Sequence record: PV740454.1
Strand: one strand, 5' to 3'
DNA length: 64,000 nucleotides
Shown in pieces: positions 13,076 to 52,118 of this stretch. Under the pieces are notes generated by a model. It saw only the letters and a list, made by a program, of their open reading frames with translations. It was not told where the DNA came from and searched no databases. A program made the position numbers and the translations under genes. The stretch's first letter is position 1, and every line of letters begins with the position of its first letter.

Positions 13076-13963
13076 ATGATTATTTTTGAACATCACGACT
13101 CGCTTGTTGAAGCTTTTACTACACCTGCTCCGTATCGTTGGGCAGATGATAATAATATTGTGTTCAGAGTCGGGTCAACGAATTACCAGGCTAATATCAA
13201 CTCATACGAGAACAGAAACACGCAGAGTCGAAATATAGACGTGTCATTTCAATGGCAGACTGAAAGCGGTAGATGGACGTTCACATTGAAAAAAGGTGAC
13301 AATCCGAAAGACGCACTTACAGTGATCAGTACAATTCTAGCTGCTACATTTGAAAAGGAAGCGAAAGAGAAGCCAGATACGATTTCGTTTAGTGCGTTCA
13401 CCGATGACAATGATAGAGACGCACAGAAGCGTTTCAAACTTTACAAACGAATTGCTGAGCGTTATGCAAAAGAGCGTAATTACACACTACAAGTTCATGA
13501 TCGTTCTTTTCTTCTAACTAATAACGCGAAACCAAGTCAGATGAGAAGATTCCCGAACGACGGCGTTATTGAAGAAGACGGTCTTGTTTATGCTGAATTC
13601 CCGCGTGTCAATGCGTTCACATGGGCTAAAATGTTCTGGCTTGACAATGCAGGTGATTACATCGACTTGTCTCTACCACATGGTCGTGTTAAGGTGACTC
13701 GAACATCAGAAGATGTAGTCACTGTCGATGGGCGCAACGCAGAAGGCAAAATCGATAACTTAGATAGCTCTTATGTATGGCTGAGTATGCTTGGTGAGAT
13801 TAAAGTTCGTTCACGAACCGGTCGAGAATTCACATTGCCTGAAAGGGGTGTTATGCTTGACGCTGGTGACATGATTTTGTGTGACGATAAGACAATATAT
13901 TACTTGTCAGATGAAGAAATGTTCGGTGATATTTGGGGTTACGACATCGTAGAAATCGTATAA
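13076..13963 (+). CDS. Late protein, paralogous family member A (candidate internal/injected protein)
   Basis: Shares DALTV..T...ISFSAF.D..D.DA.KR..LYKR.AER with 50359 and 51282. Confidence 0.7.
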   Translation: MIIFEHHDSLVEAFTTPAPYRWADDNNIVFRVGSTNYQANINSYENRNTQSRNIDVSFQWQTESGRWTFTLKKGDNPKDALTVISTILAATFEKEAKEKPDTISFSAFTDDNDRDAQKRFKLYKRIAERYAKERNYTLQVHDRSFLLTNNAKPSQMRRFPNDGVIEEDGLVYAEFPRVNAFTWAKMFWLDNAGDYIDLSLPHGRVKVTRTSEDVVTVDGRNAEGKIDNLDSSYVWLSMLGEIKVRSRTGREFTLPERGVMLDAGDMILCDDKTIYYLSDEEMFGDIWGYDIVEIV

Positions 13964-13991
13964 AAAAAGGGAGCAATTTGCTCCCTTTTTT
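13962..13991. terminator. Bidirectional terminator between convergent genes
   Basis: A7-GGGAGC-AATTT-GCTCCC-T6. Confidence 0.85.
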
Positions 13992-13993
13992 GA

Positions 13994-15652
13994 TCATGGT
14001 ACTAGAGGACTACGCTCTTTAACCAATCGTTCTTCGTCAACCGTTGGTTCGGCTGCACGCATGAAGTCAGCGACTTCAGTTAGTTCATGAATTCGTTCTT
14101 GTCGTTTACGTTCAGAAAGAACACTGAATTTTTCATGTTTGTTCTTTTTCTTCAGTCTGATGACTGCATCGAATTCAGAAAGTTGAATCAGCTCAGCTTC
14201 AAACAATGTATTGCGATTGATGATGAATTCGCAATCACCTTTCTTCCCATGCTTACCTGTTGCAAGAATCGGCAAACCTTCAGCTTCGATAACAAACACA
14301 ACGTTCAATTTCTTATCAGATTCAATCATATCTCGCATTGACGATTTGCTATTTTTATCGATTGCATTCACGATAGTTTTCGATGATGATTCAACGAAGT
14401 TACATGCAACAATGGGGTTTGTGGATGATGAAATAAACGCAGTAGACGCGAATACCCCAGATTCAAGAATCGCACCGACTCGCTTGCTGCTCATTTCAGC
14501 ACCGCGATACAATGTCATTTCACTAGAAATCTTACCAGCTTCAGCAAACGCATGATCTAGACGTTTAATGATGTCTGATGCTTTATCAGATTCAACGCCA
14601 TGTACTAGTGCTTCGTTTACTTTCCACGCATATCTAGACGCCGAATAGCGAGAGATTGCAGCTTGTGTAAGTGCTCCAAGCCCAGCGAATGAATCTTCTT
14701 GCATCAATAGAATAGAAAGACGCTCATATTGCGCTTCAAGAGCACGAGAACGCGATTCAAGTAAGCAATTGAATACATCACTAGGGTTTTTAGATTCGTG
14801 TATGTACGAGTTTATAGAGTTAGCAAGAGCTGGTAGCTCAAGATTCATGTCAATCAATCCTTGTGCAGCCATTGCGATTTTTGACTCAGATTCGTTTAAT
14901 GCAATTTCAGTTAAACGCGCATTGTGTGATGTACTGTAATGTGATTCGAGTTGTGGCATTTGAAGAACCGCGTTCGGAACACGAGCAGCAGGATTATCGC
15001 CAACCCACGTATCGAGAACAACATCGTCATAGTCATCATATTCAGCACCAGCAGTAACGATGATTGTTTTCTTGCTTGAAATGTCAGTTTCTTGGGACAT
15101 TTTAGCAGCAATCATGTTTACCGTTTCTTCAGACGCTTCAAATAGCTTGTCAGCGTTGTAGCCTGGTTTTGTGATGACGAAGTAGCTGAAGTCATCAACC
15201 ATTTCAGATGAACCATCGTTGACGATTTTAGTCGTTTCACATCCGTAGCGTAGTTTTTTGAATAACGTTTTTACGCGCATATCAAACATTTTACCACTAC
15301 CTAGCTTTTGAATACGCATCGATACAACGTTAGCACGACGACCGAGCATGAATTCGTAAACAAGAGTTACAATAGTTTCAATTAGTTTTTGCTGGTCACC
15401 CATTTCACGAATGGTTAACCCGCCTTTCTTTCCGCGCATTGCAGAAACAGTACAGAACCAGCTACGTTTTCCACGATTGCCGATGTCTGATTTAGTTTTA
15501 GTAGTGAACGAAACAACGATGTCCCTAGCTTCGCCTTTCATATCGATCACAAAGAATTTGTTTTCTTTGGTCGAGCGAGCCGGATAGAAGTCGTATGTCG
15601 CGCTCATGTTTTCTGTTAATTGTTGATATCCAATCATTTTGTATAGACTCAC
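13994..15652 (-). CDS. alt: Alt-like ADP-ribosyltransferase (start may be the ATG at 15637)
   Basis: TLYRG, FISSS and DCEFII (R-S-E clade ART); N-terminus resembles T4 Alt; LTE cleavage-like site; CATAAATA on minus strand at 15671-15678. Confidence 0.75.
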   Translation of the reverse strand: MSLYKMIGYQQLTENMSATYDFYPARSTKENKFFVIDMKGEARDIVVSFTTKTKSDIGNRGKRSWFCTVSAMRGKKGGLTIREMGDQQKLIETIVTLVYEFMLGRRANVVSMRIQKLGSGKMFDMRVKTLFKKLRYGCETTKIVNDGSSEMVDDFSYFVITKPGYNADKLFEASEETVNMIAAKMSQETDISSKKTIIVTAGAEYDDYDDVVLDTWVGDNPAARVPNAVLQMPQLESHYSTSHNARLTEIALNESESKIAMAAQGLIDMNLELPALANSINSYIHESKNPSDVFNCLLESRSRALEAQYERLSILLMQEDSFAGLGALTQAAISRYSASRYAWKVNEALVHGVESDKASDIIKRLDHAFAEAGKISSEMTLYRGAEMSSKRVGAILESGVFASTAFISSSTNPIVACNFVESSSKTIVNAIDKNSKSSMRDMIESDKKLNVVFVIEAEGLPILATGKHGKKGDCEFIINRNTLFEAELIQLSEFDAVIRLKKKNKHEKFSVLSERKRQERIHELTEVADFMRAAEPTVDEERLVKERSPLVP

Positions 15653-50362: not shown

Positions 50363-51279
50363 AATTTAGCGAATATCAAAGAATGAACGAATCTTTAGAT
50401 CGTCCATCCAACTACAAGCTGGTTCGAGAACTCCCAAATTTAAACGTGTATGCGTTTCAGGTCGATGGTGTTTATTATGAAATAGACATTCAGAAATCAA
50501 ATATACGAGAGCCGAACGGGATGCAGACAATGAAAGCTGAAGTTTCATTCAAAGCACTCGACGGTAGTGGTTATCAACTAACCAAAAAAGACGATAAAAC
50601 GGCGAGAATTGTACTGTCAACCGTTGTTAATGCTATATTCAGCTTCGTACGCGAATACAATCCTGCTCAAATATTATATTCCGCATTCAATGATGCTGAT
50701 CCGTCAGATGCTGCTAAACGTCTTCGCTTATATCAGGTCATGACTAAAGCAAAACTGCGTGAATTCCCTGATTATGATTTCAGAAGCGTTGGACGTGATT
50801 TCATCGTCTATGATGTAAATTATCAAAAACGAGTCGAAGAATTTTCACGAAGAGCACGCAGACCAGTTGGGTATGACGAAAGACCTGATCACGTCGAGAT
50901 AAATTTGTCACATGCAAATGCATTTGCGTTTGTACGAGCATTTGGGGTAAATGAAGGCGACTCGAAAAGCGGCGTGCTAGGCAAAGGTCGAGCTTTCGTA
51001 GGAGCAACAAACGAAATTAAAGCACGTCTAAGAGTGGATCGTGTTGTGTATGAAATGTCTGATAGAGAAGGATGGCTTGCGGCTCTTCAGCACCCTATAT
51101 TTGACTATGGAGAGGGTCCTGAAGTTGATCGAACATACCTAGTCGGTGCGTTTAAGAACTTCTATATCGTGTTGACTAGTCAAACAAGTCTAAAAATATA
51201 CACCGATGATGCTGCGTTTACAAAATATGTGAATGCATTTGACGCGCCATGGTTAAACCCTGAAATAATGGAATCTTAA
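50359..51279 (+). CDS. Paralogous family member B (candidate internal protein)
   Basis: MKFSEYQRMNE-SLDRP; ILYSAFNDADPSDAAKRLRLY. Confidence 0.7.
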   Translation: MKFSEYQRMNESLDRPSNYKLVRELPNLNVYAFQVDGVYYEIDIQKSNIREPNGMQTMKAEVSFKALDGSGYQLTKKDDKTARIVLSTVVNAIFSFVREYNPAQILYSAFNDADPSDAAKRLRLYQVMTKAKLREFPDYDFRSVGRDFIVYDVNYQKRVEEFSRRARRPVGYDERPDHVEINLSHANAFAFVRAFGVNEGDSKSGVLGKGRAFVGATNEIKARLRVDRVVYEMSDREGWLAALQHPIFDYGEGPEVDRTYLVGAFKNFYIVLTSQTSLKIYTDDAAFTKYVNAFDAPWLNPEIMES

Positions 51280-51281
51280 AA

Positions 51282-52118
51282 ATGAAATTTAGCGAATATC
51301 AAAACGAACTAAACGAAGCGTTTGACAGACCAGCACAGATCACAAATCGACGTGGCAATCAAAGTTATTTCATGATTGGACAGAATGAATACATGATTGG
51401 GTTGTATTACGATGAATCAGAACAAAAATTATCAGTTGATTTTATGATGAGACCGGCAGGGGAGTCGTCTTACTATTACACATTGACAAAAGGTGACACA
51501 AAAGACGCATTGACTGTGTTCGCAACTGTGATTTCTGAAATCAAGCGCAAAATGCAGACTGATATTGTAAATGTTATCGAGTTTAGTGCATTCGCTGATT
51601 CTGATAGCTCAGATGCTCGTAAACGTGAGCGATTGTACAAGCGCATGGCAGAACGATTCAGCAAAGAAATCGGGTTTAAACTATCTGCAAGTAGAGGTGA
51701 CTTTGTTCTACATCGAACCAAAATAGTTGAAGAACCAAAGGGGTATGATACAGCATGGGGAACTGAAACACTTGATGTCAATCTAATCAATGACGCAGCG
51801 ATTGTGAAAGTGACTGGAGGTGACGGTGAATGGCGTCTCGATGATTGGAATAAGCTAATCGTCAAAGACGGTAAAGTGACATTAACATCTGGTTCAATCA
51901 ACTCAGATGATGCGTGGTATGATGCATTCTTTGATCTTGAATGGGACGATGGTGATGAAGAGTGGATTGACGGTGAGCAAGAGATTGCGATTATTAACGG
52001 CAAAGTGTGGGTAATTAACGGCAGTGAAATCACAATATGGAAGAGCATTTCAGATCTTGAAATGCAAAGTGAAGGTTTAACGCTATCAAGCACTACATTG
52101 CATACGTTGGGATATTAA
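51282..52118 (+). CDS. Paralogous family member C (candidate internal protein)
   Basis: MKFSEYQNELNE-AFDRP; IEFSAFADSDSSDARKRERLYKRMAER. Confidence 0.7.
   Translation: MKFSEYQNELNEAFDRPAQITNRRGNQSYFMIGQNEYMIGLYYDESEQKLSVDFMMRPAGESSYYYTLTKGDTKDALTVFATVISEIKRKMQTDIVNVIEFSAFADSDSSDARKRERLYKRMAERFSKEIGFKLSASRGDFVLHRTKIVEEPKGYDTAWGTETLDVNLINDAAIVKVTGGDGEWRLDDWNKLIVKDGKVTLTSGSINSDDAWYDAFFDLEWDDGDEEWIDGEQEIAIINGKVWVINGSEITIWKSISDLEMQSEGLTLSSTTLHTLGY

Follow-up and report, generated by a model that had tools for sequence, protein, structure and literature searches.

A DUF6934-like module shared by paralogous proteins and the Alt-like enzyme of Vibrio phage CZ01 as a candidate domain for packaging into the phage head

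Vibrio phage CZ01 is an nt-1/KVP40-like, T4-type myovirus (Straboviridae) with a genome of 247 kb. The window analyzed here, a stretch of 64,000 nucleotides (nt), is the final 64 kb of its record (PV740454.1; window base 1 is record base 183139), and open reading frame (ORF) A within it shows 100% identity to CZ01 and 97.7% to phage nt-1. An earlier note on this DNA had described four paralogous ORFs, here called A, B, C, and D, which share an N-terminal module, and had proposed a modular architecture of injected effectors. All four ORFs are present. We give a probability of roughly 0.55 to the reading that the family comprises head-packaged, protease-processed, and probably injected proteins, with the module as their shared packaging (core-docking) domain. 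The features concerned are given below in window coordinates unless stated otherwise; lengths are in amino acids (aa), and a slash marks the predicted cut behind a leader.

13045..13052, + strand: TATAAATA, a late promoter box of T4 type without mismatch, separated by 23 nt from the start codon (ATG) of A
13076..13963, + strand: paralogue A (CZ01_338), ORF of 295 aa
13076-13111, + strand: leader of A, MIIFEHHDSLVE/A
13076-13516, + strand: DUF6934-like module of A, found by BLASTP to B and C
13517-13960, + strand: C-terminal domain of A, beta-rich and acidic
13994..15637, - strand: Alt-like ADP-ribosyltransferase (ART; phrog_802), 547 aa from the ATG at 15637, with leader MIGYQQLTE/N, a module-homologous N-terminal domain (aa 6-136, ~15230-15622), and the ART domain in the C-terminal half
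15671..15678, - strand: late-promoter-like box CATAAATA with one mismatch; the ATG of the Alt-like gene follows 33 nt downstream; suggestive only
40413..40420, + strand: late-promoter-like box TCTAAATA with one mismatch, 27 nt upstream of D; suggestive only
40448..42112, + strand: paralogue D, ORF of 554 aa, with leader MKLFTEFYQEVRLDE/I, a diverged module with insertions (aa ~13-176, 40484-40975), and then a very acidic, possibly HEAT-repeat-like C-terminal region
50359..51279, + strand: paralogue B, 306 aa, GTG start, orthologue of KVP40.0115, with leader MKFSEYQRMNE/S, module at 50359-50808, and C-terminal domain at 50809-51276
51282..52118, + strand: paralogue C, 278 aa, orthologue of KVP40.0116, with leader MKFSEYQNELNE/A, module at 51282-51710, and a beta-rich, acidic C-terminal domain at 51711-52115
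record 151443-152363 (L005 1462-2382), - strand: CZ01_265, with the module at its C-terminus, outside the window

The gene order at A is T4-like: the DNA ligase gene (gp30) is followed by A and then by the Alt-like gene on the opposite strand. The mechanical ORF call for the latter starts with a GTG at 15652 (552 aa), whereas the orthologues and the CZ01 annotation place the start at an ATG five codons downstream. From this ATG (MIGYQQLTE, 547 aa) an L-x-E motif falls at residues 7-9; the orthologues begin with MIGFQQL.

Homology of A, B, and C covers the first ~145 residues of each, with BLASTP E-values of 1e-21 (A/C), 3e-13 (A/B), and 4e-15 (B/C), and all three match phrog_6387. D falls in another PHROG, and BLASTP of D gave nothing significant in register. 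An alignment of five D orthologues, however, matched the module profile in register (hhalign Prob 97%, E 1e-10, 128 columns), so the earlier description of D as a diverged copy is borne out and homology among all four is upheld. The motifs quoted for the module (E-A/S-F-D-R-P, K-G-D-x-K-D-A-L-T-V, F-S-A-F, and R-L-Y-K-R) are likewise real and lie in conserved columns. A resemblance of the Alt-like N-terminus to the module had also been suspected. Alignment of six Alt orthologues with a profile of 147 module sequences confirmed it (hhalign Prob 91%, E 1.1e-6, 119 columns), the aligned region beginning at the common L-x-E motif; a narrower module profile had missed this match. A module-profile search of the whole CZ01 record added CZ01_265, in which the module occupies residues ~165-300 behind an unrelated N-domain of 155 residues. 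A, B, C, D, the Alt-like enzyme, and CZ01_265 are homologous, and the CZ01 genome has at least six family members. In Vibrio phage D479, three tandem family members of 259, 245, and 153 aa (L009 2498-4413, + strand) adjoin tail-tube, fiber-chaperone, and RNA-ligase genes, and a fourth, stand-alone copy is found elsewhere in that genome.

At the sequence level, the C-termini of the four paralogues are unrelated, as had been claimed. Pairwise BLASTP of the C-terminal halves gave E>0.1, and hhalign revealed a borderline match for A-B (E 2.7e-4, Prob 42%) and nothing for any other pair. Because many relatives of ~300 aa hold two copies of the module, the C-terminal halves were also tested as degenerate second modules, which was rejected (hhalign Prob ≤0.2%). 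Nothing was found in a Pfam scan of the A, B, and C C-terminal domains and the CZ01_265 N-domain, and residues 148-278 of C had no structural match in PDB, AFDB, BFVD, or Atlas beyond full-length orthologues. The remainder of D has a net charge of -70; the HEAT-repeat likeness of its C-terminal region is to be taken as a lead.

The further claim, that the C-terminal domains are swapped, polymorphic cargo, did not hold. The loci of A, B, and C are syntenic among KVP40-like phages, and their C-terminal domains are kept in the same-locus orthologues of KVP40, VH7D, D485, and 1.081.O with 32-97% identity. The C-terminal domain of each paralogue diverges at about the rate of its own module; hypervariability across related vibriophages was not observed, and identity tracked that of the module. 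As these domains are conserved orthologues at fixed loci, polymorphic cargo is unsupported. The sole exception is CZ01_265, whose N-domain is 73-94% identical across orthologues, its module just 24-30% in KVP40 and D485. This pattern implies that the module was exchanged and the partner domain retained.

The most conserved feature of the family bears on packaging. Among 147 diverse module copies, internal ones included, the start reads [LIV]-[TN]-E-[ASL]-[FL]-[DN]-x-P, with the Glu present in 145 and [LIVM] at position -2 in 135; in the vibriophage modules the Glu is invariant (23/23). Judged by its residues, this start motif is a putative site of the T4 gp21 prohead protease, L/I-x-E. In the window proteins it terminates leaders of 9-15 residues, with the ends L-V-E/A in A, M-N-E/S in B, L-N-E/A in C, L-D-E/I in D, and L-T-E/N in the Alt-like protein. 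These five leaders resemble the T4 capsid-targeting sequence (CTS), MKTYQEFIAE (PMC8442874), and closer copies of it stand on other CZ01 proteins (MKTFNEFLAE/A, MKTYNEFKKLNE/A, MKTFNQFVSE/S, and MKKFNAFLTE/V). CZ01 also encodes a prohead protease of the Peptidase_S77 family (record 143066-143605, 325.7 bits).

Other ORFs of the window have leaders of this kind. An ORF of 102 aa (62423-62731, + strand) without a Pfam match starts with MKTFNEFLAE/A, equal to the T4 CTS at 7/10 positions, and is likely to encode a small internal head protein. Two adjacent ORFs with CTS-like leaders, of 481 aa (19120-20565, + strand; MLGNFDSFLSE/N) and 215 aa (20574-21221, + strand; MKKFNAFLTE/V), are candidates for further packaged proteins. 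An ORF of 86 aa (7609-7869, + strand) starts with MLKSFIELNE/M, another leader with an L-x-E site.

The kinship to Alt extends to Alt proteins of T4-like phages. The Alt-like ORF matched phrog_802 over residues 285-550 (E 9.6e-85), and its close homologues carry PF03496. A search of BFVD with the model of C returned Alt/ADP-ribosyltransferase proteins of seven T4-like phages (HY03, Melville, Henu6, phiAS5, CF1, SP18, and MK-13) at E 6e-5 to 2e-3, and in the ESM Atlas a T4-type Alt cluster (PF03496 + PF26846 Tevenvirinae_ADPRT) aligned to this model over 140 residues with a root-mean-square deviation (rmsd) of 3.6. The N-terminus of T4 Alt, ME-LITE-LFD, fits the start motif, and the match of the T4 Alt sequence to the module profile was confined to that motif (E 0.019). 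Word-based homologue searches retrieved close relatives only (6 for C and 10 for the Alt-like protein); those of T4 Alt were all ~99% identical, so that no T4-side profile of the Alt N-terminus was obtained. An AlphaFold2 (AF2) model of the Alt-like N-terminus from an 11-sequence alignment had a predicted local distance difference test score (pLDDT) of 52.9, too poor for a fold search, and was not used. The AlphaFold DB Swiss-Prot search for T4 Alt gave weak RNase E/G, TacT, and SepF matches only and no viral entries. According to the T4 record, alt.-1 and alt.-2 (L052 5066-5451, - strand) arose by an old duplication of the beginning of alt; as alt.-1 begins with MELITELFD like Alt, T4 appears to have a broken extra module copy.

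T4 gpAlt is a component of the prohead core with ~40 copies, from which gp21 removes a small N-terminal peptide and which is injected (PMC9958956). In the words of a 2023 review, it "remains mysterious" how proteins come to be located in the scaffolding core; core proteins other than IPII and IPIII lack the targeting sequence of 10 residues (PMC9958956). T4 Alt is an NAD:arginine ADP-ribosyltransferase (PF26846 + PF03496 in Pfam 38.1), and in the literature found its N-terminal region has no assigned function. This region shares with the module the I-T-E-L-F-D start and a predicted fold that aligns over 140 residues; the ADP-ribosyltransferase domain of Alt is absent from A, B, C, and D. On the packaging reading, Alt would be the one family member with a known effector domain.

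The module belongs to the surroundings of a widespread Pfam family. At E≤1, 18 of the 23 vibriophage modules matched DUF6934 (PF22028), with a best E of 5.4e-8. Against the curated cut-off of 27 bits, the CZ01 copies reached 17-22 bits: B scored 22 (E 3e-4), CZ01_265 21.5, and the Alt N-terminus 17.1 (E 0.045), and weak matches were also found in 4/6 Alt orthologues. From these scores, the CZ01 modules are best described as distant DUF6934 relatives and not as members by Pfam's own rule. Relatives found with the module profile scored 40-163 bits on PF22028, which makes the homology to DUF6934 transitive, and the predicted fold is shared as well, the DUF6934 Atlas cluster aligning to the model of C over 133 residues (rmsd 2.8, TM 0.74). 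A profile search of 1.84 billion representatives yielded at least 1000 proteins at E≤1e-3, 106 of them at E≤1e-10. Their architectures include stand-alone forms of ~150 aa, tandem pairs of ~300 aa, and proteins of 800-1500 aa with three to six copies. All eight large multi-copy proteins scanned scored above the DUF6934 cut-off, and the two examples inspected are sited on large marine phage-like contigs. The BFVD search with the model of C gave 37 viral matches at E≤1e-3, among them fusions of the module to a zeta-toxin domain, to ParB/Srx, and to a deoxycytidylate deaminase, and also a protein annotated as structural. No published description of the module, its kinship to the Alt N-terminus, or its motif was found in the part of the literature that was covered.

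The earlier suggestion of a GNAT-like fold agrees with the structural comparison. The AF2 model of C (pLDDT 92.8) predicts that a short helix at the N-terminus is followed by four antiparallel strands and then by helix, strand, helix, and a final pair of strands. With VIA-align against the PDB, nearly all of the top 50 matches were GNAT acetyltransferases (Z 6.5-7.8, residues 17-147, ~100 residues), although by the program's own note Z 7-8 is typical of models without a true match (its "common arrangement" range). Foldseek found nothing in the PDB below E 0.01, only a mix of RNase E and GNAT-like matches, and the AFDB clusters and ESM Atlas yielded uncharacterised proteins of ~150 aa and the DUF6934 cluster (TM 0.62-0.75). 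As modeled, the module fold thus resembles that of a GNAT from beta2 onward, with the same core order of antiparallel sheet, helix, strand, helix, and two strands. It differs in having no alpha1-alpha2 arm (a complete GNAT is beta1-alpha1-alpha2-beta2-4-alpha3-beta5-alpha4-beta6). Motif A, the Q/R-x-x-G-x-G/A loop before alpha3, is absent from A, B, and C, which have K-G-D-(N-P/T)-K-D-A or K-K-D-D-K-T-A at its position; among the CZ01 copies, T-G-x-G-like loops occur in CZ01_265 and D only, and they are also found in many distant relatives.

The module could accordingly be an enzyme, either a trimmed GNAT-type transferase of acyl or other groups or a CoA- or nucleotide-binding domain, and the paralogues host-takeover or DNA/protein-modifying enzymes, packaged or not. 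Beyond the PDB matches, this would suit the T-G-x-G-D sequence of the beta4-alpha3 loop in the wider family, where GNATs have their pyrophosphate loop, and the near-invariance in that family of the Arg and Tyr of R-x-x-L-Y. It would also suit two metagenomic array proteins in which stretches scored by Pfam as GNAT lie between modules. Nevertheless, we regard an enzymatic module as unlikely. Z values of 7-8 are commonplace for VIA-align, and no Acetyltransf_* Pfam model matched any of the 23 modules or the five window proteins at E≤1, nor did any family member match a GNAT model. With the G-x-G loop missing in A, B, and C and the alpha1-alpha2 arm missing from the fold, the acyltransferase option of the earlier note is unsupported. 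Moreover, an enzyme domain is not usually repeated three to six times within one polypeptide, and the module is joined to domains that are already enzymatic (ART, zeta toxin). The two array proteins are P0021 (1031-1098) and P0030 (369-438), with Acetyltransf_1/7 stretches in the gaps between DUF6934-like copies; they hint that a slot in those arrays can be filled by either a true GNAT unit or the module.

Packaging of module proteins can be assessed in the jumbo phage Atu_ph07, in which three proteins hold five copies of the module between them. With computed masses of 87.07, 31.68, and 33.72 kDa, these proteins correspond to gp53, gp482, and gp483 of Table S5 (PMC6102473). All three were detected in virions by electrospray ionization tandem mass spectrometry, with 31, 9, and 16 unique peptides (PMC6102473), and peak in gel bands 9, 12, and 12, respectively (PMC6102473, Table S5). 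These bands otherwise contain proteins of ~21 kDa (band 9) and ~14-16 kDa (band 12), that is, below full length. Each Atu_ph07 module is preceded by NLTE/LFD or NLNE/LFD, and a Peptidase_S77-family prohead protease is also present. Judged from the masses, a cut at the internal site of gp483 (33.7 kDa, two modules) would give two halves of ~16 kDa, and a cut of gp53 before its last module would give a piece of ~22 kDa.

The same data could be read differently, with the module itself as a head-internal protein, DNA-associated or core-building, the attached domains as accessories, and the arrays as polyproteins cut into units. Stand-alone forms of ~150 aa are indeed common, arrays reach five to six copies with an L-x-E before each, and the two-module gp483 peaks in the ~14-16-kDa band. 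However, isoelectric points of the module range from 5.6 to 10.0, which makes uniform DNA binding unlikely, and the predicted cut in A, B, C, and Alt leaves the module attached to the second domain. We consider a module that acts in its own right inside the head improbable.

The timing of expression was approached through the late promoters. The box TATAAATA occurs in 16 copies in the 247-kb genome, 12 of which are followed by a gene start within 80 nt, and the genes behind it include A, genes probably of the capsid and the tail, and those of two small proteins that have CTS-like leaders. Boxes with one mismatch are fewer in the window than expected by chance (41 seen, 68 expected), and those at Alt and D therefore count as hints only. 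No late box was found before B or C. A terminator-like hairpin (cccattgagaaatcgatggg followed by a T-run; 40384-40406, + strand) directly precedes the late-promoter-like box of D, so that D looks like its own transcription unit.

It is also doubtful that the proteins are ordinary, unpackaged cytoplasmic paralogues, for example host-takeover adaptors for protein binding, with a coincidental or structural likeness to leaders and L-x-E sites: B and C do have small genes of early type and genes of nucleotide metabolism as neighbors, enrichment of the loose leader pattern is just ~twofold, the CZ01 copies score below the 27-bit cut-off, and DUF6934 has no assigned function, but this reading would leave unexplained why a protease-type motif is nearly invariant at every domain start, why the Alt N-terminus is homologous, why A has a late promoter, and why all three Atu_ph07 homologues were detected in virions.

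Packaging through the module is favored on several grounds. The Alt N-terminus is homologous to the module, and T4 Alt is packaged in the core and injected. The start motif matches the gp21 L/I-x-E site in nearly all of the 147 copies, and CZ01 has both a Peptidase_S77 gene and CTS-like leaders. The perfect late promoter of A is common to probable capsid genes, and all three module proteins of Atu_ph07 were detected in virions. In the proposed sequence of events, the proteins would be synthesized late, promoter evidence for this being at hand for A only. They would be incorporated into the scaffolding core of the prohead through the DUF6934-like domain of ~140 residues together with the short leader. 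The Peptidase_S77 prohead protease would then trim them at the [LIV]-x-E before every domain copy, cutting behind its invariant Glu. The products would be retained in the DNA-filled head and exit together with the DNA. The second domains would be the working parts, namely the ADP-ribosyltransferase of Alt, the acidic, beta-rich domains of A, B, and C, and the acidic, possibly HEAT-like region of D. For the CZ01 proteins themselves, we infer packaging, cutting, and injection, as well as docking to the core by the domain and not by the leader alone.

Of the modular injected-effector architecture first proposed, modularity stands and is extended by the finding that the module is also the N-terminal domain of Alt; the swapped polymorphic cargo falls away. 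Between an acyltransferase and a delivery domain, the two functions suggested for the module, delivery fits best in view of the CTS-like leaders with L-x-E sites, the late promoter at A, and the virion proteomics of homologues. The fusion of the module to varied enzyme domains (zeta toxin, ParB/Srx, deaminase, and ART) is likewise the pattern of a delivery domain.

Several observations weigh against packaging by the module, and it needs to be judged with these in mind. A canonical late promoter is found at A only, the boxes of Alt and D having one mismatch each; no late box was found for B and C, which belong to a series of small genes next to genes of nucleotide metabolism. In contrast to the basic internal proteins of T4, the family members in CZ01 are acidic, and the nearest solved structures of the fold are enzymes (GNATs). 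The loose leader pattern is enriched ~twofold at N-termini (29/386 genes, compared to ~4% internally), and [LIV]-x-E-A-F-D-x-P could be a structural or ligand-binding element instead of a cleavage site. Finally, virion detection comes from the Atu_ph07 homologues only, and the link between the Atu_ph07 bands and cleavage at the motif rests on masses, not on mapped termini.

Two known systems are comparable. The T4 internal proteins have a short leader ending in L/I-x-E that is removed by a single gp21 cut, and the product is kept in the head and injected (PMC8442874, PMC3012670). CZ01 has near-copies of the T4 leader on other small proteins. In T4, however, the leader alone suffices for targeting, and the proteins are small, mostly basic, and of unrelated fold, whereas in the CZ01 family the folded domain of 140 residues after the site is the conserved element, even internally. 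The second system comprises the MuF-domain fusions or 'polyvalent proteins', in which a head-incorporation domain is combined with varied enzymatic effectors delivered along with the DNA (Iyer et al. 2017, PMC5512222). The CZ01 family is proposed to follow this logic; MuF is unrelated to the module and occurs in other phage groups, and the CZ01-type proteins are two-domain proteins or arrays of the same domain.

A broader idea is offered tentatively. The DUF6934-like domain with its preceding [LIV]-x-E might possibly be a general ticket into the T4-type prohead core, and arrays of three to six copies might be polyproteins cut into internal head proteins of ~16 kDa, some of which release enzymatic cargo inside the capsid. 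If true, this would explain the localization of Alt; the arrays concerned are those of large marine phages and jumbo phages. Among enzymes that are carried in a phage head and enter the host along with the DNA, T4 Alt is the classic case, and if its N-terminus is one copy of a widespread domain with a protease site, the question of core localization becomes testable in T4 and KVP40. A Pfam domain of unknown function with at least 1000 representative sequences in phage metagenomes would gain a function, and candidate injected proteins and their effector domains would become readable from phage genome sequence. In addition, foreign proteins could be loaded into T4-type capsids by way of the module, which would be a second handle and one based on a domain.

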